A stretch of 64,000 nt of DNA from IMGVR_UViG_3300020442_000005:62001-126000, one strand, 5' to 3'. Positions 49,525-64,000 are shown, numbered from the stretch's first letter. The notes: a model not told the origin generated them from the letters alone. Made by a program: numbers and translations.

Positions 49525-52179
49525 ATGTCATTTGTAAAGCTAAACCAAAATAACTTTGCGATGACGTCTGTTGTTCTAAATGCCGATCGTACATTTGTTT
49601 CATCGTCACTTGGGATAACAGGCGCATTAAAAGTTATTGTGGATCGGTCTGAAACCCAGAAAGATAGTGTTGACGATCGGGTAGGCCTGACGGGTGATAA
49701 TACGCCACAGCCTTTTGGGGAAAATACCTACGAAGGCAGGCGTATTATGATTATGGAAGCTGCGGCATTAGGATCTGGTAACGCAGAATTTGAAATAGCA
49801 ACGTTGCTTGATGGTACCGGTGCGGTTGCTGGTCATGAGCCACCAGAATACGAGAAGTATGGAATAGAGGCTTCTACGACAACGTCTGAAACTGGGTATA
49901 GTGATATATCAATGCATCCCAGGAACAGCACAGAACTTCTTGTGAGGGCCCTAAAACCTACAAATTCAATCTTCTCTTCTGGATCGATGGCTTTGTCTTT
50001 ATCTGAACGGATTTTAGAACCTTATTACAAGGTACAGAACAGTGCTATAGGTTCAAAATTTGTTAATTTTAATTGCATGAGCTTTTTCGAACCCAGTGGT
50101 TTAAAACCGGCTTTGATATATCGCGCACAGACTGAATTAAATAATAACAACGTTCTGGAATACATTTATCAATCCCGAAGCGGAGATTTTTCAATTGAAT
50201 TTTACATAAAACTAAGAGATACTCTCAAAACCGGGACTGTCATACATTATCCAGGTCATTTTAGTGTTTCGGTTTTAACTGGATCTGAGAAAAACGCAAG
50301 CGGATTTGCAACAAATTACTCTCTTGGTTTAGCTATCGGTAGCGCTGTAACCCTGAGTTCGGCTGATACTCCGTATAATTTAACTTTTGGAACAACTTCC
50401 CAAACTCAGAAATCGCAATCAACTATAGTAAAAGATTATTGGCACCACTGTGCAATAACCTATAAACGATCTACTGGTGATACTTCGATATATATCGACG
50501 GAAAACTTAGCTCACGATCCAAGCATGCTCGTGGGATTGCAACTACCGATACGTATAATGGACTGATAATTGGATCTTATTATAACGGATCAACTTCAGA
50601 CTTGCCCAAGCTTACTAGTGATCAGATTCAAGGACACGGCTCCTTACAACAACGCGCTGAGGATGTAGCTTCTAGTAATTTTGACTGCCATTTAAATGCC
50701 GATATCCATGAAGTTCGAATCTGGAACAAAGTCATTAACGAGAAACAAATTGCGCAATACATGAATACAACCTATACAGGCTCATATGCTGACCATCGCA
50801 ATAGAGGTTTGATGCTTTATGTACCGGGATTGTTTGATGTTGACTACAGATACTTACATACTCATGTTGTTAATCCACGTGACAGCAAATTTGCGGCTGA
50901 AAATAAAAATCAACCATCCGGATTTACATTTTCTTATGGAAACAATTCGACACCAGATTTTGGTACAGTTGCATACACAGGATCGCTAGCGGCAAATATA
51001 AGTGATTTAAGTGAATTATTTGATGGAGCCACGCCAGGCGTTACTAAGAAGCTGATCGCTGCCCCGTATAACACGAACCACGCAAACATAGGAAATTTTG
51101 CTAACGTAAATATACAAGGTTTTTTAAAAGATTTTGCAAATATTAACTTTCCTCACTGTCATCATTTATCTGAGTCTCTCGGAGATTTTTATTCAGATGC
51201 TGAAGTGTTGAATGTGTACGAGTCTTTTTATAATACAAATGCAGATTTGACAAGTTCGTTTAACCAAACTTTGGGACATCAAGCCCGAAACTGTTTTATT
51301 TTGCCGTGTGACAATGGCAATTTTAGACCTGATTACAATACACTGTTTCATTCGACTGGCAGCAATTTCCTTTCTAATGATGGGTTTTATATAAACACAA
51401 AGAACATTGGAGACCTTGATGATCTGCTAGATTCCAGATTGTTTTTTATTGATGATGTTTTCGCGCAGCGAGGAACTTTTAATTCTCCAGAATCTTTCGA
51501 GAATACGCAAGGCGGTGATTCTAGATATAATTCTGGAATTGATTTATTTGTTATAGACGATGATCAACTTAACCAAGATATTATGAATTTTGATCAACCA
51601 ACGTCTGCCGGTGCAATGTCAGAATTTTTTGACACATCGGATTTTCCAGGACAGCTTACGACTGTTGTTACCATTCCTCAGCTCTATTATGGAAGAAGAA
51701 TAAAGCCTGGCAGTCTAAAGTTATCAAGTCATCTTTACAATGGTAACCAGGCTCAAATCGAATTACGTGATAATGGTTACGGAGTTTTATATAGGCACCA
51801 AGCATCTGGTTCAATAGCCAATTGGAATAAAGTGGGCGACGTCTTTTATGGCGAAGGTTTAATTTACATAAGGCATCCTTCCTTATACGGATTCTCGGAT
51901 AGTGATATGACATTAGAGTTTCAATCTGAAAGTCAAGTCAATGTTTTTGAAGCAAGCATCCCATGTGTATCAGCACAATTTAACAGTTCATCAAATCCAA
52001 ATTATAATAAGTTACGACCTTCATTGAATGATAATGAATCCGCCGAAGACTTTGTATACATATCGACGGTATATTTACACGACAACAACCTTAATGTTGT
52101 TGGTAAAGCAAAGCTGGCTCAGCCAGTTATTAAAAGGCCGGACAACAAATACTTATTTCGCGTAAAACTGGATTATTAA
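49525..52179 (+). CDS. Structural protein with a LamG domain; C-terminus paralogous to 48113-49510
   Basis: FSIEFYIK...WHHCAITY...IYIDGK...IHEVRIWN. Ends FNSSSNPNY...YISTVYLHD...AKLAQPVIKR...FRVKLDY. Confidence 0.65.
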   Translation: MSFVKLNQNNFAMTSVVLNADRTFVSSSLGITGALKVIVDRSETQKDSVDDRVGLTGDNTPQPFGENTYEGRRIMIMEAAALGSGNAEFEIATLLDGTGAVAGHEPPEYEKYGIEASTTTSETGYSDISMHPRNSTELLVRALKPTNSIFSSGSMALSLSERILEPYYKVQNSAIGSKFVNFNCMSFFEPSGLKPALIYRAQTELNNNNVLEYIYQSRSGDFSIEFYIKLRDTLKTGTVIHYPGHFSVSVLTGSEKNASGFATNYSLGLAIGSAVTLSSADTPYNLTFGTTSQTQKSQSTIVKDYWHHCAITYKRSTGDTSIYIDGKLSSRSKHARGIATTDTYNGLIIGSYYNGSTSDLPKLTSDQIQGHGSLQQRAEDVASSNFDCHLNADIHEVRIWNKVINEKQIAQYMNTTYTGSYADHRNRGLMLYVPGLFDVDYRYLHTHVVNPRDSKFAAENKNQPSGFTFSYGNNSTPDFGTVAYTGSLAANISDLSELFDGATPGVTKKLIAAPYNTNHANIGNFANVNIQGFLKDFANINFPHCHHLSESLGDFYSDAEVLNVYESFYNTNADLTSSFNQTLGHQARNCFILPCDNGNFRPDYNTLFHSTGSNFLSNDGFYINTKNIGDLDDLLDSRLFFIDDVFAQRGTFNSPESFENTQGGDSRYNSGIDLFVIDDDQLNQDIMNFDQPTSAGAMSEFFDTSDFPGQLTTVVTIPQLYYGRRIKPGSLKLSSHLYNGNQAQIELRDNGYGVLYRHQASGSIANWNKVGDVFYGEGLIYIRHPSLYGFSDSDMTLEFQSESQVNVFEASIPCVSAQFNSSSNPNYNKLRPSLNDNESAEDFVYISTVYLHDNNLNVVGKAKLAQPVIKRPDNKYLFRVKLDY

Positions 52180-52727
52180 TGATACTTGGACTTGATGTTT
52201 CTACTGCAACGATCGGATATACGGTGCTCGACAACGACGGCTTTGTTTTAGAAATGGACTTTATATCTCTTAAGAAAATAAAAGGCATAACAAACAAAGG
52301 TTTTCATTTTCGAAAAGTATTGAGAGAGATTTGCAAAAGGCACAGTATCAAGGAAGTCTTTATAGAGGAGTACTTTCAAAGATTTGCTCGAGGCATGTCC
52401 TCTGCGCGTACTATCACGCTTTTATCATCGTTTAACGGGATAGTTCAGTACATATGTCATGATGAGTTAGGAATAGCGCCAGAACCAATTGCTGTGAACA
52501 CGTGTAGAAGTTTAGTAGGCATAAAAACACTCTCGAAAAAGAAGGCTGGAAAGGACGTTAAAGAACAGGTTTTTGATTGGGTGTCGAATCACCTACAATA
52601 TAAGTGGCCAACTAAGATTTTACAATCAGGCCCTAGAAAAGGCCAGCTTATAATATTGGAAGAAGCCAGAGATATGGCAGATGCATGGGTTGTAGCAAAG
52701 GCGGGATTTGTAAAAGCGTCAACATAG
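52179..52727 (+). CDS. RuvC-like Holliday junction resolvase
   Basis: MILGLDVSTATIGY, VFIEE, DMADAWVVA (RNase H-fold acidic residues). Confidence 0.85.
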   Translation: MILGLDVSTATIGYTVLDNDGFVLEMDFISLKKIKGITNKGFHFRKVLREICKRHSIKEVFIEEYFQRFARGMSSARTITLLSSFNGIVQYICHDELGIAPEPIAVNTCRSLVGIKTLSKKKAGKDVKEQVFDWVSNHLQYKWPTKILQSGPRKGQLIILEEARDMADAWVVAKAGFVKAST

Positions 52728-52736
52728 GGATATAAT
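52708..52736 (+). promoter_or_regulatory. Sigma70-like early promoter TTGTAA-N17-TATAAT
   Basis: TTGTAA 52708-52713 and TATAAT 52731-52736, with ATG at 52743. Same hexamers and spacing as at 55095. Confidence 0.7.
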
Positions 52737-52742
52737 AATGTC

Positions 52743-53678
52743 ATGAATGACAAAATAAAATATCTACACGGCGTCTTTGGTAAATCAAAGCTGCAAAACA
52801 ACGGAATAGAACTTATGGTTCCTTGCCCCTATTGCAAGGAAACCAAGAAAATGAAGATGAATATTCGTCTTGATTCTGACTTGTGGCATTGCTGGGTATG
52901 CAATAGTAAGGGTCGATCCCTGGGTCGATTAATTAAACAAAAGAACCCTGCGAAGGTCGCCGAATACTTTGAAAGGTTTGCTAAAAACTTCACCTACAAC
53001 AATTATACCCAATTACAGACTACAATTGAGCCAGTCACAATACCAATTGGCTTTAAATTACTTATGACAAACTTAAACAATCCAGATGCTTTACCGATAT
53101 ATCAATATGCTAAATCACGTGGCATCACTGATTCTATGCTTTGGTCCTTTCGCGTCGGCTTTACTGAGGATTGGTCATACAGACGTCGTTTGATTATACC
53201 TTCCTTTACAGAAGAAGGTGAGCTAAACTACTGGACTAGTCGCTCTATCGACCCTGATAACCCTTATCGATACTTAAATGCAAAGGCAGACAAGAAGCAG
53301 GTCATATTTAACGAGATAGAGATAGATTGGAACAAGCCGGTGTATCTAGTCGAAGGTCCTCTGGATTTGATAAAGTGTATGAATATAAACTCAACGTGTT
53401 TACTTGGTTCTTCTCTGTCCGAACAGTCATTATTGTTTTATAAGCTGGTAATGTTTGCCGACAAAATAATACTATGTCTCGATGCAGACGCTCAGAAAAA
53501 GCAAGACGCAATTGCCGAAGCCTTAATGGCATATGATAAGCGTGTTTATTACGTTAAGCCTCCATCAGACGGACGGGATTGGGGTGATCTGGCGCCGGAA
53601 GAAGTTGAAAGTCATATGTCACAGATAATAGAGTACACAAAAGCTACCCGGTTGAATAATTTAATAGGAAGTTTATAG
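52743..53678 (+). CDS. DNA primase (Zn-binding domain plus TOPRIM)
   Basis: CPYC...WHCWVC, RRLIIP, YLVEGPLD, LCLDADA, DWGD. Confidence 0.9.
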   Translation: MNDKIKYLHGVFGKSKLQNNGIELMVPCPYCKETKKMKMNIRLDSDLWHCWVCNSKGRSLGRLIKQKNPAKVAEYFERFAKNFTYNNYTQLQTTIEPVTIPIGFKLLMTNLNNPDALPIYQYAKSRGITDSMLWSFRVGFTEDWSYRRRLIIPSFTEEGELNYWTSRSIDPDNPYRYLNAKADKKQVIFNEIEIDWNKPVYLVEGPLDLIKCMNINSTCLLGSSLSEQSLLFYKLVMFADKIILCLDADAQKKQDAIAEALMAYDKRVYYVKPPSDGRDWGDLAPEEVESHMSQIIEYTKATRLNNLIGSL

Positions 53679-53686
53679 ACCGGCTA

Positions 53687-53694
53687 ATAATTAT
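53687..53694 (+). promoter_or_regulatory. Candidate late promoter ATAATTAT
   Basis: Motif copy 22 nt before the first ORF of the small-gene cassette. Confidence 0.5.
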
Positions 53695-53716
53695 GAGTGT
53701 AACTAGGAGTCAATGA

Positions 53717-53938
53717 ATGCATGCAGAAATACTAGCGCTAGCCTCTAGAATTAAAGGTGTTACCCTTGACGAGTTAAAAGATAATTTCGGCTTTAAAGCA
53801 TTCGATGTTATCGATGAGCTGGCTGAGGAAAACGAAGTCTTTTTAGACGATCGTACCGGCATTGTTTATGCAGCCGGAACAAACCCGTCACCTTGCCTAA
53901 ATGAAATAATCATATCATACATGGAAGATAATAAATGA
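53717..53938 (+). CDS. Small acidic hypothetical protein
   Basis: AGGAG SD upstream; stop overlaps the next start. Confidence 0.6.
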   Translation: MHAEILALASRIKGVTLDELKDNFGFKAFDVIDELAEENEVFLDDRTGIVYAAGTNPSPCLNEIIISYMEDNK

Positions 53939-54378
53939 GACTTACAGAATCACGGCTTAGAAAAACAATCCGAAAAATTATTCAAGAGGCATTCTATAAT
54001 AAATATGGTCAGCCTATAGGCAGCCGGTACCGCGGCGGTCCACTACATCAAAATCTTGGTGCACCATACAGACCGAAAGAAAAATATAATCAAATGATGC
54101 GATTGCTTAGAGGTTATCAGCGTAAATGCAACCATGCTAGCTTGGGAAATGAGATGAACATGAACGGAGTTTGGATAAAGTTAGCTATGGGTCTTTTATC
54201 AGATATAAGATGCTATGATGGCACACAGGGTCCTGTACAGTGCAAATTAAAGTTTCAAGGTAAACAATTAATATTCGACGAAGTAGAGGATCTCAAATCA
54301 TTCTTGAACGAACCAGAACTTTTGCAAATGCAAAAAGAAGAGACAGAAGAATTGAATGCCAAGTATGGAGAGTACTAA
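53935..54378 (+). CDS. Putative capsid-internal protein with leader MRLTESRLRKTIRKIIQE-A
   Basis: Shares its N-terminal leader with the next two ORFs. Confidence 0.6.
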   Translation: MRLTESRLRKTIRKIIQEAFYNKYGQPIGSRYRGGPLHQNLGAPYRPKEKYNQMMRLLRGYQRKCNHASLGNEMNMNGVWIKLAMGLLSDIRCYDGTQGPVQCKLKFQGKQLIFDEVEDLKSFLNEPELLQMQKEETEELNAKYGEY

Positions 54379-54379
54379 G

Positions 54380-54763
54380 ATGAAAATTACAAGAAGACAA
54401 TTAAGAGGATTGATTGTAGAGGCGGTATATGCATCTTCACCTCAGGCCGCGTACGATAGACTTAAGTCTTTAGAGCAAGGCAACGGCAGATATGATATTA
54501 GTATATACCAAAGGTTCGGTCTAGAAAGATACGCCGATATCATTCGTGCAGATCTTGAACGAAGGCCTCAAAGCCATATTCCTGCAAATCAGATCGAAGA
54601 GGTAGCTGAAGAGTATGAAAAGCTTTCAAAACAATTTAAAAGAGTTAACATAACAACTCAAACAGATAGACGTTACGGCCGAAAAAGATATGCTATGGAA
54701 CATATACCATCGGGCGAACAATTTAGTTTAGGCACAGACCGAAAAGGAAGCTTAGGGAGCTAG
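54380..54763 (+). CDS. Putative capsid-internal protein with leader MKITRRQLRGLIVE-A
   Basis: ATG at 54380 after GGAG (track start 54356). Shared leader. Confidence 0.6.
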   Translation: MKITRRQLRGLIVEAVYASSPQAAYDRLKSLEQGNGRYDISIYQRFGLERYADIIRADLERRPQSHIPANQIEEVAEEYEKLSKQFKRVNITTQTDRRYGRKRYAMEHIPSGEQFSLGTDRKGSLGS

Positions 54764-54764
54764 C

Positions 54765-55043
54765 ATGAAAATTACAAGAACACAGCTTAGAAGAATTATT
54801 AAAGAAGCCGGCTACGAGGGTAGGTATTTTCATCAGCACGGTACGGGTACCTTTTATTCACCAGATGAACAGTTCCGAGAGGACGTACATTTTATCTTAG
54901 ATAACTCTCCATCGTATAACTCGTACTGGGAAAAAGTGTACAAACTAATCGAAGCATTAGATGAAGACGAAAGATACATGGCTGAAAAGATTGCAGACGA
55001 TATGTGGGAAAGACACACAAACAGAAATTATAGATACTACTGA
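54765..55043 (+). CDS. Putative capsid-internal protein with leader MKITRTQLRRIIKE-A
   Basis: GGGAG SD. Shared leader, also near-identical at DNA level (atgaaaattacaagaa). Confidence 0.6.
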   Translation: MKITRTQLRRIIKEAGYEGRYFHQHGTGTFYSPDEQFREDVHFILDNSPSYNSYWEKVYKLIEALDEDERYMAEKIADDMWERHTNRNYRYY

Positions 55044-55068
55044 TACAGTAAAAGTATCATGAGAATCT

Positions 55069-55089
55069 GTCAGGCTAAGCCTGGCTTTT
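55069..55089 (+). terminator. Probable intrinsic terminator closing the small-gene cassette
   Basis: GTCAGGC-TAA-GCCTGGC stem (one G-U pair) followed by TTTT. Confidence 0.55.
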
Positions 55090-55094
55090 ATATA

Positions 55095-55123
55095 TTGTAA
55101 ATTACTTCATAATAGACTATAAT
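55095..55123 (+). promoter_or_regulatory. Sigma70-like early promoter TTGTAA-N17-TATAAT
   Basis: TTGTAA 55095-55100 and TATAAT 55118-55123, intergenic. Confidence 0.7.
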
Positions 55124-55149
55124 ATATAAAATACTGTTTGGAGTTTATA

Positions 55150-58100
55150 ATGAGAATAGCACATATTGCCGACGTCCACTGGCGCGGTTATCAACGTCAT
55201 GTTGAGTACCGTACATCTTTTTCTGATATGTTTAGACAATTGCGGGAACTAAAGGTCGACGCCATATGCGTTGCTGGTGACATCGTTCATTCAAAAACAC
55301 AGGGTATATCACCTGAGTTAATCGATAATTTAAATTGGTGGTTTACAGAACTTTCACGTATTGCTCCAACTCATGTTATTCTTGGAAATCACGATGGTTT
55401 GATTTTAAACAAGGATCGCCAGGATGCGATTAGTCCAATACTTAATGCGTTGAATCTTCAAAACGTTTATCTATACAAAAAATCCGGCGTATATAACGAC
55501 CCAAACGATGATAGATTTAACTGGTGTGCTTTTAGTCCGTTTGATGAAGAAGGATACGCAGAGGTCAAGCCACAAAGAGGAAAAATAAATATTGCTATGT
55601 ATCACGGCGCTGTGTGGGGTTCTCATACTGATATGGACTTTATGCTAGACGGTGACTGCAAGATGGATTTCTTCCGCGGTTTTGACTATGTTATGCTGGG
55701 AGATATACATAAGCGTCAGCAGCTAGATAAAGATGGCCGTATATGGTATCCTGGATCTCCCATACAACAGAACTATGGTGAATCTGGAGACAAAGGCTTT
55801 CTATTATGGGACATAGAATCGGACTCTGAGTTTGATGTAGAATTTTTTCCTATTAGACATGACAATCCATTTGTCACTGTTGATTGGCAAGGTAACATTC
55901 AGTCGACCATATCTAAATGTATGAAAGAATGGCCGGCCGGAGCACGATTTAGAATTAGGTCGACCGTTGAACTAGATCCTAAAACTCAAAGAAAGCTGGC
56001 AACAGTCCTTCGTCGTGAACATGGCGCTGATGAAGTAGTATATCAGTTAAAGCTAAAGCAGTCCTCTATATCAAAAGAGACGTCTGAAAAGATAAAGATT
56101 CAAGATCTTTCAGATCCGCTAACCCATAAAAAACTATTGAGAGAGTGGTCAGACGATGACGGACTTACAGATCCAGAATTTTGGAGTGAGGTTGATCGTA
56201 TTGTAGATGAAACCGTGCCAAAATTAAAAGTATCAGCTGACCATAAAGGTAATCTATGGTCTATTAAAGAAATGAACTTTGATAACACTTTTGGATACGG
56301 AAAAGACAACGTTATTAATTTTTCTAAGTTATCTGGAATTGTTGGTTTATTTGGACGTAATCGCTGTGGTAAATCTTCTATTCCTGGTACTATCATGTAC
56401 GCTTTATACAATTCTAACGATAGAGGAATCGCATCAATTCAGCACGTCATTAACACTAGGCGATCAAACTGTTCAGCCGACGTCACTTTTTCTGTTAACG
56501 GCAGACTATACAGGCTGGAAAGACATAGCGTTAGATATCCTGCTAGAGGCGGTAAGAACGAAGGCGCAATGTCTTATCTGTCTCTCTATGAGGTTGATGA
56601 TGAAGGCAGAATTATCAAAGACCTTTCAGGCGAACAAAGAAGAGATACTGAAAAATCTCTGAGAAATTTGATTGGTACTCCAGAAGACTTTATGATGACG
56701 TCATTTGCCGCACAGGGCAACATGAACTCTTTTATTAAGCAAGGGCCTACAGAAAGAAAAAAGACGATCTCGAACTTTATGGGCTTGGATGTATATGATC
56801 AATTTCAAAGTATCGTAAAAGAAGAATCAGCTGGCGTTAAAAACATGCTTAAAAGGTTATCTGAAAAAGATTGGGTTGCTTTGATTAGATCAAATAGAAC
56901 AGATATAACCAACTTTAAAGAGCAAAGAACTCATTTGGCTGAAAAGATCAACGATCTAAATGATCGCTATCGGGAGTTTTCTGAAAAAGCGCAAGAGGAG
57001 TCTGGTGGCGACTTTGTCGACCCTTCTCAGTTAGCTAGAAAAAGAAGATTACTTGAAAACAAAAAATCAGGTTTGTCTGATATAAGATATCATATTAGCA
57101 CCCTACAAGAAAGACTATCAACCGAGCAGGAAAACCTCGTTGTTCTAGAAACATTTAGAGACAATTTTCCATTAGAATCATACAATAGAAGGCTAGAGTT
57201 GCTCGAGGGTTTGAGAAGAAACCTGCAGAAAATGCAAATGAATCTTAAGCAAGAAAGAACTGTTATGGCAAATCAAAAAAAATCAGTATCACTTCTTAAA
57301 GAGGTACCATGTGGTGATTCGTTTCCTACATGTAAGTTCATTGCCGAAAGTCACAAAAACAAAGCTTTATTAAAAGAACAGAAAGAGTTAGTAAGTAATT
57401 TAAAATCCGAATTAGACGAAGCCAAAATTAAACTTGAACAGATTGAAGAAGAAGGTTTACGACAAAAAATAGAAGAATATAACGACAATCTCAAAAAAAT
57501 TCAAAATACTAAAATGTCAATTGTGGTTTCTAAATCGAAACTAGAAAAAGAGAACAGAGATTTAGCAGATGCATTGCAGGATATCCAAAGACTGTCTGAT
57601 GAGATTACAGACATGGAGTTAAGATCCGATGAAGAAAAATCTGTCGTGTTAGCTAATTTAAAATCTAAGTTAAAAGCGATTGATTCTGAAGTAAAAGAGT
57701 ATAAGCTAGATATGTTTTCACTAGCTCAAAAAATAGGAGAGTGTCAGGCAAATATTAAACAACTAGAAAAGGAATCGGTAGAGTTCGATAGATTACAAGT
57801 TGAATGGAAAGTATACGATTATTTGCTCAAAGCCACGTCTTGGCGAGGTATACCTGCGTATATCATGAAAAAACAATTACCGATTATTAATAGTGAAATG
57901 TCAAAGATACTTCAAGATACTTCTGGTTTCACAGTGGAGCTAGATATTACAGATAAGAAAACTGATATCTTTATTAACTACGGTGATAGTCGGCGACCTA
58001 TAGAGTGCGCAAGTGGCATGGAGAAGATGGTTTCTTCTATGGCTTTACGAGTTGCTTTAGGAAACGTATCAAATCTAAACAAGTCTGATATGTTTATTGT

Positions 58101-58284
58101 AGATGAGGGTTTTGGCGCACTAGACCATCAGAATGTAGAAGCTGTAACTTCATTAATGAAAAGACTTAAGGCTTATTACAGACTAATCATGGTTATTTCG
58201 CATGTTGACGTTGTAAAAGATTCAGTTGATAATATTATCGATATAACAAAAGTTGGCATGGAATCAAAAGTGGAATATGTCTGA
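55150..58284 (+). CDS. Fused Mre11/SbcD nuclease - Rad50/SbcC ATPase (T4 gp47-gp46-like)
   Basis: Phosphoesterase motifs DVH, GD, GNHD and GDIH, then Walker A GRNRCGKS, coiled coil, ASGME signature, Walker B FIVDEGFGALD and ISH. ATG at 55150 after GGAG. Confidence 0.92.
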   Translation: MRIAHIADVHWRGYQRHVEYRTSFSDMFRQLRELKVDAICVAGDIVHSKTQGISPELIDNLNWWFTELSRIAPTHVILGNHDGLILNKDRQDAISPILNALNLQNVYLYKKSGVYNDPNDDRFNWCAFSPFDEEGYAEVKPQRGKINIAMYHGAVWGSHTDMDFMLDGDCKMDFFRGFDYVMLGDIHKRQQLDKDGRIWYPGSPIQQNYGESGDKGFLLWDIESDSEFDVEFFPIRHDNPFVTVDWQGNIQSTISKCMKEWPAGARFRIRSTVELDPKTQRKLATVLRREHGADEVVYQLKLKQSSISKETSEKIKIQDLSDPLTHKKLLREWSDDDGLTDPEFWSEVDRIVDETVPKLKVSADHKGNLWSIKEMNFDNTFGYGKDNVINFSKLSGIVGLFGRNRCGKSSIPGTIMYALYNSNDRGIASIQHVINTRRSNCSADVTFSVNGRLYRLERHSVRYPARGGKNEGAMSYLSLYEVDDEGRIIKDLSGEQRRDTEKSLRNLIGTPEDFMMTSFAAQGNMNSFIKQGPTERKKTISNFMGLDVYDQFQSIVKEESAGVKNMLKRLSEKDWVALIRSNRTDITNFKEQRTHLAEKINDLNDRYREFSEKAQEESGGDFVDPSQLARKRRLLENKKSGLSDIRYHISTLQERLSTEQENLVVLETFRDNFPLESYNRRLELLEGLRRNLQKMQMNLKQERTVMANQKKSVSLLKEVPCGDSFPTCKFIAESHKNKALLKEQKELVSNLKSELDEAKIKLEQIEEEGLRQKIEEYNDNLKKIQNTKMSIVVSKSKLEKENRDLADALQDIQRLSDEITDMELRSDEEKSVVLANLKSKLKAIDSEVKEYKLDMFSLAQKIGECQANIKQLEKESVEFDRLQVEWKVYDYLLKATSWRGIPAYIMKKQLPIINSEMSKILQDTSGFTVELDITDKKTDIFINYGDSRRPIECASGMEKMVSSMALRVALGNVSNLNKSDMFIVDEGFGALDHQNVEAVTSLMKRLKAYYRLIMVISHVDVVKDSVDNIIDITKVGMESKVEYV

Positions 58285-60544: not shown

Positions 60545-62572
60545 ATGGCTGAAAACAACAATGAAAATCTGTTTAGACGGCTAACTAAACTATTCAGATC
60601 CGGACCTACTGTAAAAAGAAGAGTTCGCTCATATGATCCAAATTCTCAGACTGCCTCAACCGCGGTTGATTTATTTAAAAAGGCTCATTCAGATGTATAT
60701 AATTCAACATTAAGTGCTTATGGTACTTTTGATAGAATGGCAAGATATTCTGATTTTTCAGAAATGGAAGCTACACCAGAGATTGCCAGTGCGCTTGATA
60801 TATACGCAGAAGAAACAGTTTCAGAAGACGCTGAAGGTAAATGCCTACACATCAGATCTGATAATAGAAAGGTGAGGGAATTACTAAGTACACTGTTTTA
60901 TGATACCCTAAACATTGATTTCAATCTTGTCATGTGGGTTAGAAATCTTTGTAAGTATGGTGATTTCTTTTTATTCAACGACGTACATCCAGAGTATGGA
61001 GTGATAAACGCTTATCCGATTCCTATTACAGAGATGGAGCGCGAGGAAAATTACGATCCATCAGATCCTGCCGCGGTAAGATTTCGTTGGGTTACACAGG
61101 GCAATCAAGTTTTAGAAAACTGGCAGATTTCTCACTTTCGTTTATTGGGTAACGACGCTTTTCTTCCATATGGTTCTTCGGTATTAGAGTCTGCGCGTCG
61201 TATTTGGCGCCAGCTTATTCTTATTGAAGATGCAATGCTAGTGTATCGCGTTATTCGATCCCCGGAAAGACGTGTGTTTTACATTGATGTAGGTAACGTT
61301 CCACCAGAGGATGTACCCAATTATGTTGAGCAAGCCAAAACGGCATTAAAGAGAAGCCCGGTTATTGATAAAAGCAATGGCCAGATGGACCTTAGATATA
61401 ATCCAATGTCTGTCGACGAAGATTATTTTATTCCAGTTAGAGGTGGAGATTCTGGAACAAAAATAGATTCTTTAGCGGGAGGTTCGAACACATCTGCTAT
61501 CGAAGACGTTGAATATATACAGAAAAAACTATTTGCCGCTCTAAAAATACCAAAAGCTTATTTGGGATATGATGAAGATGTCGGAGCCAAAGCAACGCTA
61601 GCACAAGAAGATATCAGGTTTTCTAGAACAATCCAAAGAATTCAAAAGACAATTATTGCAGAACTTAATAAAATTGCAATGATCCATCTTTACTCTCATG
61701 GATTTGAGGGTGAAGACTTACTAGATTTTAGTTTATCTCTATCAAATCCAAGTTCCCTAGCTCAACAACAAAAACTTTCTTTAATAGAGCAAAAATTTTC
61801 AATTGCTGGTTCTGCACCTGAGGGAATGGTCTCAAGAACATGGATACGGCAAAATGTTTTTGGATTCACACGTGACGAAATAGATCGAATAGAAGAACAA
61901 AAGTTGGCTGAAAAAATACTGGACATGCAGATTGAGGCCGCCAAACCGCCTGGAGGCGAAGAGGAAGCTGAAGGTGGTGGAGACGAAGGCGGCGGTGATG
62001 AAGGTGGAGGTCTGTTTGCCGCAGACTATCCGTCAAACCAGAATTTGCTTGACGGCATGCCGGTAGAATATAGTGATACCATGGCTGAGTATGACGAAGT
62101 GTCTGAGGAAGACCTAGATGAAATAGATCTTGAAAACATATCAGCAGAATATATCAAGCCATCACAGGTATCAAGTCGACAGAAAAACGTATTTGGAGAC
62201 GATCTAATAAAGAAAAAAGATCGATCTGTGAAGAATGGATCACTTGAGACGCATATGCCGGATTTCTTAAAAATGACATCAACCGGTCGGGCAGGTAGAA
62301 AACAGGATACTTTAAATAATCCATATGATACTGATTTCCTAAAAAATCCTTTTGGTAATCCGTTTACAGAGGGCAAAAAAAGTCTTGCAGATATAATTTT
62401 AGGTGAACAAGAAGAACCTGATAATAATTATAATGGTTACAGACCAAGTTTAGATTATGCTATGCAAAGAACGTTGGAGTCAATGAATAAAAAGTTTGGA
62501 AAGTTAAAGATACTAAAGGAAGATAAAGAATTAGAACTAGGCTTCGAATTGGAGGAAGACGATAATGACTAG
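60545..62572 (+). CDS. Portal protein (T4 gp20-like) with a long acidic C-terminal extension
   Basis: EDAMLVYRVIRSPERRVFYIDVGNVP, EDYFIPVRGG, IEDVEYIQKKLFAALKIPKAYL. Confidence 0.95.
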   Translation: MAENNNENLFRRLTKLFRSGPTVKRRVRSYDPNSQTASTAVDLFKKAHSDVYNSTLSAYGTFDRMARYSDFSEMEATPEIASALDIYAEETVSEDAEGKCLHIRSDNRKVRELLSTLFYDTLNIDFNLVMWVRNLCKYGDFFLFNDVHPEYGVINAYPIPITEMEREENYDPSDPAAVRFRWVTQGNQVLENWQISHFRLLGNDAFLPYGSSVLESARRIWRQLILIEDAMLVYRVIRSPERRVFYIDVGNVPPEDVPNYVEQAKTALKRSPVIDKSNGQMDLRYNPMSVDEDYFIPVRGGDSGTKIDSLAGGSNTSAIEDVEYIQKKLFAALKIPKAYLGYDEDVGAKATLAQEDIRFSRTIQRIQKTIIAELNKIAMIHLYSHGFEGEDLLDFSLSLSNPSSLAQQQKLSLIEQKFSIAGSAPEGMVSRTWIRQNVFGFTRDEIDRIEEQKLAEKILDMQIEAAKPPGGEEEAEGGGDEGGGDEGGGLFAADYPSNQNLLDGMPVEYSDTMAEYDEVSEEDLDEIDLENISAEYIKPSQVSSRQKNVFGDDLIKKKDRSVKNGSLETHMPDFLKMTSTGRAGRKQDTLNNPYDTDFLKNPFGNPFTEGKKSLADIILGEQEEPDNNYNGYRPSLDYAMQRTLESMNKKFGKLKILKEDKELELGFELEEDDND

Positions 62573-63407
62573 AAAATCCCACAACAAAAAAAGAAATGTC
62601 GGGATTATTTACGAGCAATTGATTTTGACTGTCTCGAAAGGAATTGTAAAAAATAATCCAAAGCTTGTTGAAAGCGCGAAAAGTATTATTAAAAAACATT
62701 TTGTACCTGGCACCGAGCTATACAAAGAGCACAAACTCTTTCAAGCGCTTGTCAAACCACATATTGATAATGATTCGTTGGCAACATCAATTTTAGGCGA
62801 GGCAAAAAAAGCAGCAAGAGCCCACGATTCGAATCGATTAGAACGTGAAAAATCACGACTCATAAGAGACATAAATCTAACTTTTGGAAAAGGCTTCTAT
62901 GGTACACGTATCAAGGAATACAAGGAGTTTGCTACAGTACAGACGTTAATGAACGATTGGCGCCAAAATAGCACTAATATTCAGCGTATTGTTGAATATG
63001 AGCAAAAGGTACACAACATACTTACATCTGAAAAAACAGTAAAAACATTGTCTGAGCATAAATCACCTGATGCTGATAATCTTGTCGTAAAAATAATGAC
63101 AGAAAAATTTAATCAGAAATACGGTTCTAAACTTACTGATCAGCAAAGCATGCTTATAAAAAATTATGTAATGTCAGATAAGAAAATTAATTTTGAATCG
63201 ACACTCAATTCTATACGAGAAAACTGTATTAGAGAGTTAAATCGTTATTCAATCAACTGTGAATCATCAATAGTAAAAAGCAAAATAGATCCTGTCATTT
63301 TAGAACTAAAACAACTGGATACAGCAAATCTAAATGACGAAAACTTTAGCAAATTTATGACTTTGTGTCATTTGCAAAAAGAGCTTAAGGAGAGAACAAA
63401 TGGATAA
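62565..63407 (+). CDS. Helical protein between portal and protease, putative prohead core/scaffold component
   Basis: HNKKRNVGIIYEQL N-terminus, KFNQKY motif, and position in the head cluster. Confidence 0.5.
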   Translation: MTRKSHNKKRNVGIIYEQLILTVSKGIVKNNPKLVESAKSIIKKHFVPGTELYKEHKLFQALVKPHIDNDSLATSILGEAKKAARAHDSNRLEREKSRLIRDINLTFGKGFYGTRIKEYKEFATVQTLMNDWRQNSTNIQRIVEYEQKVHNILTSEKTVKTLSEHKSPDADNLVVKIMTEKFNQKYGSKLTDQQSMLIKNYVMSDKKINFESTLNSIRENCIRELNRYSINCESSIVKSKIDPVILELKQLDTANLNDENFSKFMTLCHLQKELKERTNG

Positions 63408-64000
63408 TGCCCTTAGATTATTACAGGAATGGAATGCTTTTTCATACGATAGAGAACAGATACTTGAGGAAAGAGCAACCAATGGCGGCCGGTATGTCAT
63501 GAGAGGCGTGCTGCAAAAATCCAACACGTTAAACCAAAACGGAAGAATATATCCGAAAGAAATATTAGAACGCGAAGTCCGAAATTATCAAAAGTTTATT
63601 GCAGAACGTAGAGCACTTGGTGAATTAGATCATCCAGAATCTTCAGTAGTTGAACTTAAAAACGCATCACACCTTGTAACTGAGGCTTACATGGAAGGGG
63701 ATATATGCTATGGAGTGGTTGAAATCCTTGATACACCGAGTGGAAAAATACTTAAATCACTTGTTGACGCAGGCGTTACTCTTGGTATTAGTTCTCGTGG
63801 TGTTGGGTCTACTCGACGTGAAGGTGACCACCAAGTGGTTCAAGATGATTTTCAGCTTATTTGTTGGGATTTTGTTAGTGAGCCATCTACTCCTGGGGCA
63901 TTCATGATGAAAGAAGGCCGTGAAATAAAAGAATCGGATTTAAAAAAATATTTTAATAAATCTGACAGAGTGGATAGAATACTTAACGATATTTTAGATT
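63400..64000 (+). CDS. Prohead core protease (T4 gp21-like), runs off the window end; absent from the ORF track
   Basis: My translation from ATG 63400 (AAGGAG SD): MDNALRLLQEW...NQNGRIYP...ALGELDHP...LGISSRGVGS...WDFVSEPSTPGAF. Confidence 0.93.
   Translation, partial: MDNALRLLQEWNAFSYDREQILEERATNGGRYVMRGVLQKSNTLNQNGRIYPKEILEREVRNYQKFIAERRALGELDHPESSVVELKNASHLVTEAYMEGDICYGVVEILDTPSGKILKSLVDAGVTLGISSRGVGSTRREGDHQVVQDDFQLICWDFVSEPSTPGAFMMKEGREIKESDLKKYFNKSDRVDRILNDILD

Follow-up and report, generated by a model that had tools for sequence, protein, structure and literature searches.

What does a short leader, shared by proteins that are otherwise unrelated, do in a large marine phage? The question is raised by a gene cassette at positions 53687–55095 of IMGVR_UViG_3300020442_000005:62001-126000, in which three consecutive open reading frames (ORFs), here called tagA, tagB and tagC, begin with similar peptides and then diverge. 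The window, meaning the whole stretch of 64,000 nucleotides that was analysed, corresponds to bases 62001–126000 of a virus record, and positions are window coordinates unless they are marked as genome coordinates. The record is a single contig of 273,025 bp from marine metagenomes (39.9% G+C; CheckV completeness of 82%), and its source is an uncultured marine jumbo phage with T4-type portal, capsid and terminase genes. We think it probable that the leader is a propeptide of the capsid-targeting sequence (CTS) type, which an S77 protease would remove from numerous and varied proteins located inside the head. Targeting to the head and cleavage are the most likely parts of this reading and are well supported by the sequence evidence; the cargos may also be injected and may act against host defences, as suggested by analogy with T4 IPI. 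What can be read from the DNA itself is the leader family, the junction motif, the protease gene, the match to a capsid-protein site, the way in which leaders and cargos are swapped as modules, and the location beside head genes.

An N-terminal leader shared by unrelated proteins

A preliminary description of this locus had proposed three ORFs with a common leader and unrelated remainders, and ORF calls together with alignment beyond the leader confirmed this. The motif that it had placed at 53687 and the terminator at 55069 were both found as well, the motif belonging to a class that is enriched in intergenic DNA and the terminator being a hairpin with a T run. The cassette is laid out as follows:

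53687..53694, + strand: promoter-like motif ATAATTAT of the ATA[A/C]TTAT class, 30 nt 5′ of the first ORF of the cassette
53717..53938, + strand: untagged 73-residue ORF, the first gene of the cassette, with no Pfam match
53935..54378, + strand: tagA, 147 residues, with the 18-residue variant leader MRLTESRLRKTIRKIIQE (53935–53988) followed by a cargo starting AFYNKYGQP
54380..54763, + strand: tagB, 127 residues, with the 14-residue leader MKITRRQLRGLIVE (54380–54421) followed by its cargo
54765..55043, + strand: tagC, 92 residues, with the 14-residue leader MKITRTQLRRIIKE (54765–54806) followed by a cargo starting AGYEGRYF
55069..55095, + strand: terminator-like hairpin GTCAGGC-TAA-GCCTGGC (hairpin 55069–55085; 7 pairs) and T run, found by a terminator scan, which closes the cassette

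For tagB, ORF calling places the start at 54356, and the ATG of the leader is at 54380.

The leader is a basic amphipathic helix of 14–27 residues with the consensus MKITKRQL+xII+E, and its net charge in 29 proteins of this genome is +2 to +5, mostly +3 to +5. A search with a hidden Markov model and a strict peptide pattern (M-[KR]-[ILV]-[TS]-x3-[ILV]-[RKQ]...) found it at the N terminus of 27 ORFs in the 273-kb genome. About 8 further ORFs carry variant leaders, such as MLLTESSLRRIIRRALIE and MRLNERRLRRVIRGLVLE, and the tagged ORFs together make up approximately 8–10% of the roughly 330 crude ORF calls. In five related genomes (G001–G005; 190–293 kb, each rated at least 92% complete), a degenerate 42-nt pattern gave 7–20 strict matches per genome, in all cases on the coding strand, and a reversed control gave no matches. 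Together with the 27 copies in this genome, these counts argue that the leader is not a product of chance. The preliminary description had treated the leader as a feature of the cassette; it is present there, and its scale was understated, as it is found throughout the genome and the lineage.

The family extends well into IMG/VR, where the degenerate 42-nt pattern matched more than 118 stretches. At least 206 different leader ORFs were present among the matches listed; their median length is 106 residues, and their leader consensus is MKITKxQLKQIIKEE(L/I)xx(L/V)LxE. The 29 proteins of this genome could be aligned only over their first 14–27 residues (mean column identity of 12%), and 54 IMG/VR proteins were likewise alignable only at the N-terminal leader. 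Three leader ORFs among the matches listed come from IMGVR_UViG_GVMAG-S-1030632-100_000001, which is labelled as a giant-virus metagenome-assembled genome and may be a jumbo phage that was binned as a giant virus. In the genome studied here, a phage transfer-messenger RNA gene (genome 9008–9366; tag peptide ANNNDNFEVALAA) lies directly 5′ of a cluster of seven leader ORFs.

A predicted protease site at the leader–cargo boundary

All 29 aligned leaders from this genome contain the motif [I/L/V]-x-E within their first 30 residues. The first such motif usually ends at residue 13 or 14, a further site is present at residue 21, 22 or 27 in 11 of the 27 strict ORFs, and the last motif is followed by alanine, serine, threonine or glycine in 25 of the 29 proteins. 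The pattern used to search IMG/VR forced the first [I/L]-x-E but not a second one. A second [I/L]-x-E at residues 15–30 was nonetheless present in 61% of the listed IMG/VR ORFs, whereas control windows taken within these proteins contained one in 14% of cases. The second motif peaked at residues 21–22 and was mostly followed by alanine, glycine or serine.

Homologues of the cassette genes locate the motif relative to the cargo and give the sharpest view of the junction. In 26 tagC homologues, the conserved cargo starts with GYEGRYF and follows a leader of 14, 19 or 22 residues, and (I/L)-x-E lies one residue before the conserved block in all but two divergent sequences. The tagA cargo, F-[W/Y]-NKYGQP, is preceded in some orthologues by the 18-residue variant leader and in others by the canonical MKITKRQLRQIIKE of 14 residues, and the leader of tagB is kept in four orthologues. 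Leaders of different length and type thus occur on the same cargo, which indicates that leader types are interchangeable and that the boundary itself is conserved.

A candidate enzyme for this site is encoded in the head module of the phage, the relevant part of which is:

60545..62572, + strand: T4-type portal gene, the start of the head module (Pfam Portal_T4, 9e-78)
63400..64000, + strand: 5′ portion of the gene for the S77 (gp21-family) prohead protease, which extends beyond the window (full gene, genome 125400–126011)

The preliminary description had noted a gp21-like protease at 63400, and its assignment to the S77 family is borne out by Pfam (Peptidase_S77, PF03420, 8e-27) and by PHROG 207 (2e-49). 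In an alignment of the phage protease with T4 gp21, the columns of the candidate catalytic residues His78, Ser131/132 and Asp157 are invariant, and EIKE|S near the C terminus of the protease aligns with EITE|S of T4. In the capsid protein of the phage, VLRE|ANTLG aligns with the known maturation site of T4 gp23, FLTE|AEIGG; the same columns read LISE|A in phage Mel-JY01 and IVSE|A in phage immuto, with the E-A pair invariant. Because the motif at the end of the leader matches this aligned site, it is most likely the motif used for capsid maturation in this phage, and the same predicted specificity most likely matures the major capsid protein, as judged by alignment. Of 8 large genomes with the leader that were tested, every one encodes an S77 protease. 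The gp23-type major capsid protein (genome 130393–132372) has 659 residues, about 120 of which form an insertion, within alignment columns 200–420, in comparison with Mel-JY01, immuto and T4.

Structural models place the leader outside the body of the protein. In an AlphaFold2 model of tagC built from 27 sequences, a leader helix at residues 5–14 (predicted local distance difference test (pLDDT) of approximately 44) is followed by a coil and a three-helix core (pLDDT of 68–82). For tagB, the first 20 residues of the model, which include the leader, have a pLDDT of approximately 62–64, compared with 86–93 for the core. A detached leader helix of low confidence argues against the alternative, raised in the preliminary description, that the leader is part of a shared folded domain.

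Position relative to head genes

Five leader ORFs (genome 132445–134386) directly follow the gp23-type capsid gene. When head proteins were compared with the IMG/VR leader loci by tblastn, a leader ORF was found directly 5′ of the protease gene in 14 related contigs, within the portal-to-protease interval that is the gp67/gp68 slot of T4. Other IMG/VR contigs have leader ORFs just 3′ of the protease gene or clusters of them just 5′ of the terminase gene. The head module also encodes a 579-residue protein with long Asp/Glu runs and a 148-residue protein, p148, which starts with MAKVKRSVLKQLIKECLVE and contains several (I/L)-x-E sites; both could plausibly be partners of the basic leader or related to it. 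As a CTS-type propeptide, the basic amphipathic helix would bind the acidic scaffold or core during prohead assembly and thereby bring its variable cargo inside. The S77 protease would then cut after the glutamate of (I/L)-x-E, at residue 14 in short leaders and at about residue 22 or 27 in long ones, and so free the cargo inside the head, from which it would exit with the DNA at infection.

The slot beside the protease gene could also be taken to mean that the tagged proteins are assembly-only parts of the core or scaffold, similar to gp67, gp68 and gp22, which would be targeted and cleaved and then degraded or expelled before DNA packaging. Several ORFs in the slot are low-complexity or coiled-coil-like and have extra internal (I/L)-x-E motifs, p148 has more than one such site, and many cargos are acidic, as scaffold proteins are. 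The cargos differ completely between related genomes, however, with tagA and tagB having no homologue in G001–G005, unlike essential scaffold parts. In the slot itself, where the position is that of gp67/gp68, the cargo changes from genome to genome and has no detectable homology to the T4 proteins. In addition, some cargos are predicted to be compact folds or enzymes (an AAA_33 P-loop kinase), and the tagA cargo is missing in a natural strain described below. We therefore consider a purely assembly-related role unlikely.

Several observations weigh against targeting to the head by a CTS-type leader. In the four closest jumbo relatives (G001–G004), most leader clusters are distant from the head module, and several clusters in this genome lie amid nucleotide-metabolism genes. 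Short IMG/VR contigs may be enriched for hallmark genes, which would inflate the apparent closeness to head genes, although this bias does not account for the specific slot beside the protease gene. The number of tagged proteins, about 30, is far above that of T4; the lineage has no cultured member, and the tagged proteins are known from sequence alone. The ‘late’ label of the cassette derives solely from a motif that is common to structural genes. Acidic cargos predominate (22 of 29; median isoelectric point of 5.0) and fit less obviously in a DNA-filled head, and the T4 proteins IPII and IPIII, by contrast, are basic. Finally, the leader is strongly basic and without sequence similarity to the T4 CTS. 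The leader pattern had no match in T4, Syn9, P-SSM2, HTVC008M, Mel-JY01 or immuto, and by eye it does not resemble the T4 CTS leader, which we take to be MKTYQEFIAE. It would thus be analogous to the T-even CTS, or very diverged, rather than the same element.

The scattered clusters would also suit an uncleaved leader that serves as a working helix in a fast-evolving paralogous family, acting in the infected cell and never entering the capsid. Such a helix might serve in oligomerisation or attach to a host target, to nucleic acid or to a membrane; binding to nucleic acids or membranes is common among basic amphipathic helices. Many clusters have thymidine kinase-, ribonucleotide reductase- and ThyX-like genes around them (identified by eye from N termini), and cleavage of the leader is itself predicted. 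An uncleaved helix leaves unexplained why (I/L)-x-E and a small residue stay fixed at the leader–cargo boundary while leader length changes. It also does not account for the identity of this motif with the maturation site of the capsid protein, for the placement in head operons or for the detached helix in the models, and we regard it as improbable. The part of the preliminary description that proposed a head-targeting system of the gp21 type has gained support from several independent lines at the sequence level, namely the junction, the gene position and the promoter motif.

A promoter-like motif shared with structural genes

The motif at the start of the cassette was derived from the genome itself by 8-mer enrichment. 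Its class, (C/T)ATA(A/C)TTAT(A), has 36 copies, 18 of which are intergenic, compared with approximately 4.5% of the genome being intergenic DNA. ATA[A/C]TTAT is located 23–48 nt 5′ of baseplate-wedge, scaffold-like and head–tail-adaptor genes (the baseplate wedge and the head–tail adaptor being identified by PHROG matches). It also precedes two other leader clusters, at 170173 and 177983 in the genome, and the remaining clusters are without it. Sigma-70-like sites (TTGTAA-17-TATAAT) were found by a promoter scan on either side of the cassette, at 52708–52736 before the primase-like gene and at 55095–55123 before the SbcCD-like gene. The interval 53687–55095 would form one late-type transcription unit with three cargos, inserted between these two genes.

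The T4 late promoter motif TATAAATA was also considered; it was not enriched (13 versus 11 copies on the two strands), and ATA[A/C]TTAT was preferred. The phage encodes a sigma-70-family protein at genome ~206.9–207.1 kb (PF04542, 1.3e-21), which may be the factor that reads ATA[A/C]TTAT.

Insertion site and natural variation

The genes that flank the cassette are:

52743..53678, + strand: primase-like gene, left flank (sub-threshold Pfam matches to DnaG_N, Toprim and CHC2 zinc finger)
55138..58284, + strand: SbcD–SbcC-like fused nuclease gene, right flank (Pfam Metallophos and SMC_N)

A search for related loci based on the primase gave no matches, and related genomes were then searched directly. 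The five closest genomes keep the gene order RuvC-like, primase, SbcCD, terminase, portal, p280 and protease. None of them has the cassette at the primase/SbcCD site, and primase adjoins SbcCD in four of them, which indicates a lineage-specific insertion. In the remaining genome, G005, the junction holds a different ORF of about 330 residues (L133:10992–12078, − strand) with a leader-like N terminus (...ITEARIREIIQEEIAIQQLLEE), which suggests that the primase/SbcCD junction is a recurrent insertion site. The tagA and tagB cargos had no homologue anywhere in G001–G005.

In runs X2 and X3, which are independent marine metagenomes, contigs carry parts of the cassette without any difference. A natural strain in run X5, approximately 96% identical, differs in content: one contig joins position 53984 to 54418, skipping 433 bases with a 6-base overlap (AGAGGC). 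Through this join, the tagA cargo is lost and the tagA leader continues in frame, at the E|A codons, into the tagB cargo; read depth over the skipped 433 bases was zero in this run. Six shared bases seem too few for an assembler to have collapsed a repeat, and only one contig shows the join. In many other contigs, the match is confined to the 43-nt tagC leader and the flanking sequences differ, which shows that the leader is attached to other genes in the same waters. The proposal in the preliminary description of an address tag joined to variable cargo is thus strongly supported, given that the cargos are unrelated, that leaders are interchangeable on one cargo and that a natural leader-to-leader recombinant exists.

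This recombinant raises the possibility that the conserved 42–66-nt 5′ ends are mainly a DNA-level recombination module for gene shuffling and that the encoded peptide is incidental. Such a module would be comparable to the mobile promoter–stem-loop cassettes that are reported for T4-type phages. The X5 crossover runs from leader to leader and deletes a cargo, two lineages have different leader-type ORFs at the same primase/SbcCD junction, and identical leader residues share a codon in 60% of cases, compared with 39% expected from codon usage. The other 40% of identical residues differ in codon, mean nucleotide identity across leaders is only 70%, and start codon, frame and peptide are kept across genomes whose terminases are only ~46% identical. 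The variation of synonymous codons within the leader implies that conservation acts at least partly on the peptide. The crossover involved only 6 bases in common. We prefer to regard recombination as a side effect that facilitates cargo exchange, and a DNA-level module with an incidental peptide seems very unlikely.

With the leader read as a CTS-type peptide, we tentatively put forward a broader proposal, which is possible but clearly more doubtful than the propeptide itself. The leader would mark the whole capsid-loaded set of proteins in a widespread, uncultured lineage of marine T4-related phages of 190–290 kb, numbering 10–30 or more per genome and up to about a tenth of the genes. This set would be a large, fast-changing arsenal delivered with the DNA, and the leader codons would be the crossover point for the gain, loss and exchange of cargos. 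Metagenomes alone would then suffice to predict injected proteomes.

Cargo identity

On the function of the cargos, the preliminary description, which had proposed anti-defence or host-takeover proteins, fared less well, as no informative family or fold emerged. Pfam and PHROG searches with the 29 cargos of this genome gave marginal single matches only. PADLOC found no match among 54 IMG/VR cargos, ESM Atlas returned no usable match for the cargos, and neither did Foldseek searches of tagB against PDB, BFVD and AFDB. Among the 54 larger IMG/VR cargos, 2 are AAA_33 P-loop kinases, one of them encoded directly 5′ of a protease gene, and 1 matches a cyclic-phosphodiesterase domain (tRNA_lig_CPD). 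These matches indicate that the cargos include at least a few enzymes, of which Alt is an example in T4.

A 2H phosphoesterase assignment for an ORF in L090, suggested by H-x-T motifs seen by eye, was not confirmed by Pfam and was set aside; the tRNA_lig_CPD match is in a different member of the 54. Among named clusters of ESM Atlas, the untagged ORF at the start of the cassette is closest to DUF2582 and DsrD-like (0.88), and it may be a small winged-helix protein, which we offer as a lead only.

Relation to known systems

Judged by the portal protein, Mel-JY01 and immuto are the closest named phages (38–42% identity), and both are without the leader. Megablast of the region against named phages gave no match, and tblastn of a long-leader protein against named phages gave nothing at E ≤ 1, leader-only similarity being too short for BLAST. 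Neither the leader strings nor a described equivalent was found in the literature searched.

The closest parallel is the CTS of T4, which is found on IPI, IPII, IPIII and Alt and is processed by gp21. In IPIII, residues 8 and 10 of the CTS are presumably those of its I-x-E motif. For IPIII to enter the head, its first 10 residues are sufficient, and residues 4 and 7 matter for targeting (PMC9026906), whereas residues 8 and 10 matter for processing (PMC3012670, PMC9026906). T-even internal proteins are diverse and have only the CTS in common (PMC3012670), and T4 propeptides are 10–20 residues long (PMC5694885). Like the proposed propeptide described here, the T4 CTS is a short N-terminal propeptide on unrelated proteins with (I/L)-x-E before a small residue, an S77 protease is encoded, and cargo sets differ between related phages (PMC3012670, PMC9026906, PMC5694885).

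The two systems differ in several respects. The leader here has 14–27 residues rather than 10, is strongly basic and often contains two nested sites; it is found on about 30 genes rather than about 4, and its cargos are mostly acidic. Furthermore, the tagged genes are arranged in many clusters and at least one self-contained promoter–terminator cassette, in a marine, uncultured lineage. The T4 propeptides of gp24, MAKINELLRE|S, where we assume that cleavage occurs after the final glutamate, and of gp67 (...LIKEEKIAIARNFLIE|G) have a helical (I/L)-x-E style similar to that of the leader.

Phages of the phiKZ-like group (phiKZ, 201phi2-1 and SPN3US) have many head-internal proteins that are processed after glutamate by the prohead protease, including paralogues with conserved N termini, and propeptides with several sites (PMC5694885, PMC9026906). 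Most of their propeptides exceed 100 residues, A-x-E is among the sites used in SPN3US and S-x-E among those in phiKZ, and their protease is a diverged relative of gp21. The leaders studied here, by contrast, have 14–27 residues and isoleucine or leucine at P3, and the protease is of the S77 family, rather than long (S/A/G)-x-E propeptides with a gp175-type protease. A looser analogy is offered by encapsulins, in which a short cargo-loading peptide directs varied cargos into an HK97-fold shell; these tags are usually C-terminal and uncleaved, and they bind the shell protein directly.

The principle is therefore known from T4, and what is new is the leader, its scale, the cassette organisation, recombination at the leader codons and the uncultured marine lineage. 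If the CTS reading is correct, sequence alone would be enough to list which proteins are packaged, and probably injected, by an abundant uncultured group of ocean phages, yielding hundreds of candidate first-minute effectors without a known family. The T4 CTS principle would then apply to about 30 proteins per genome instead of about 4, with cargo exchange by recombination at cleavage-site codons and by self-contained late cassettes. Protein delivery in phage capsids would also gain a second packaging tag, unrelated to the first.

Neighbouring genes

The SbcD-like (Metallophos) and SbcC-like (SMC_N) parts of the right-hand flanking gene form one ORF of 1048 residues, and the fusion is kept in the five related genomes; the T4 counterparts, gp47 and gp46, are separate proteins. 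An 884-residue ORF at 49525–52179, 5′ of the RuvC-like gene, has a Laminin_G_3/ConA-like lectin domain (Pfam, 4.5e-14) and is likely to be structural or adhesive, so that the neighbours of the cassette are not exclusively replication genes. A 280-residue protein with no family match (62565–63407) is always encoded between the portal and protease genes, and is also present in Mel-JY01, immuto and many related IMG/VR contigs. Within the head module, between the protease and scaffold-like genes, lies a 72-residue ORF (genome 128337–128555) that resembles ribosomal protein S21; the Pfam match is weak and below the cut-off (E of 0.006), and the same slot in Mel-JY01 holds an annotated RpsU.

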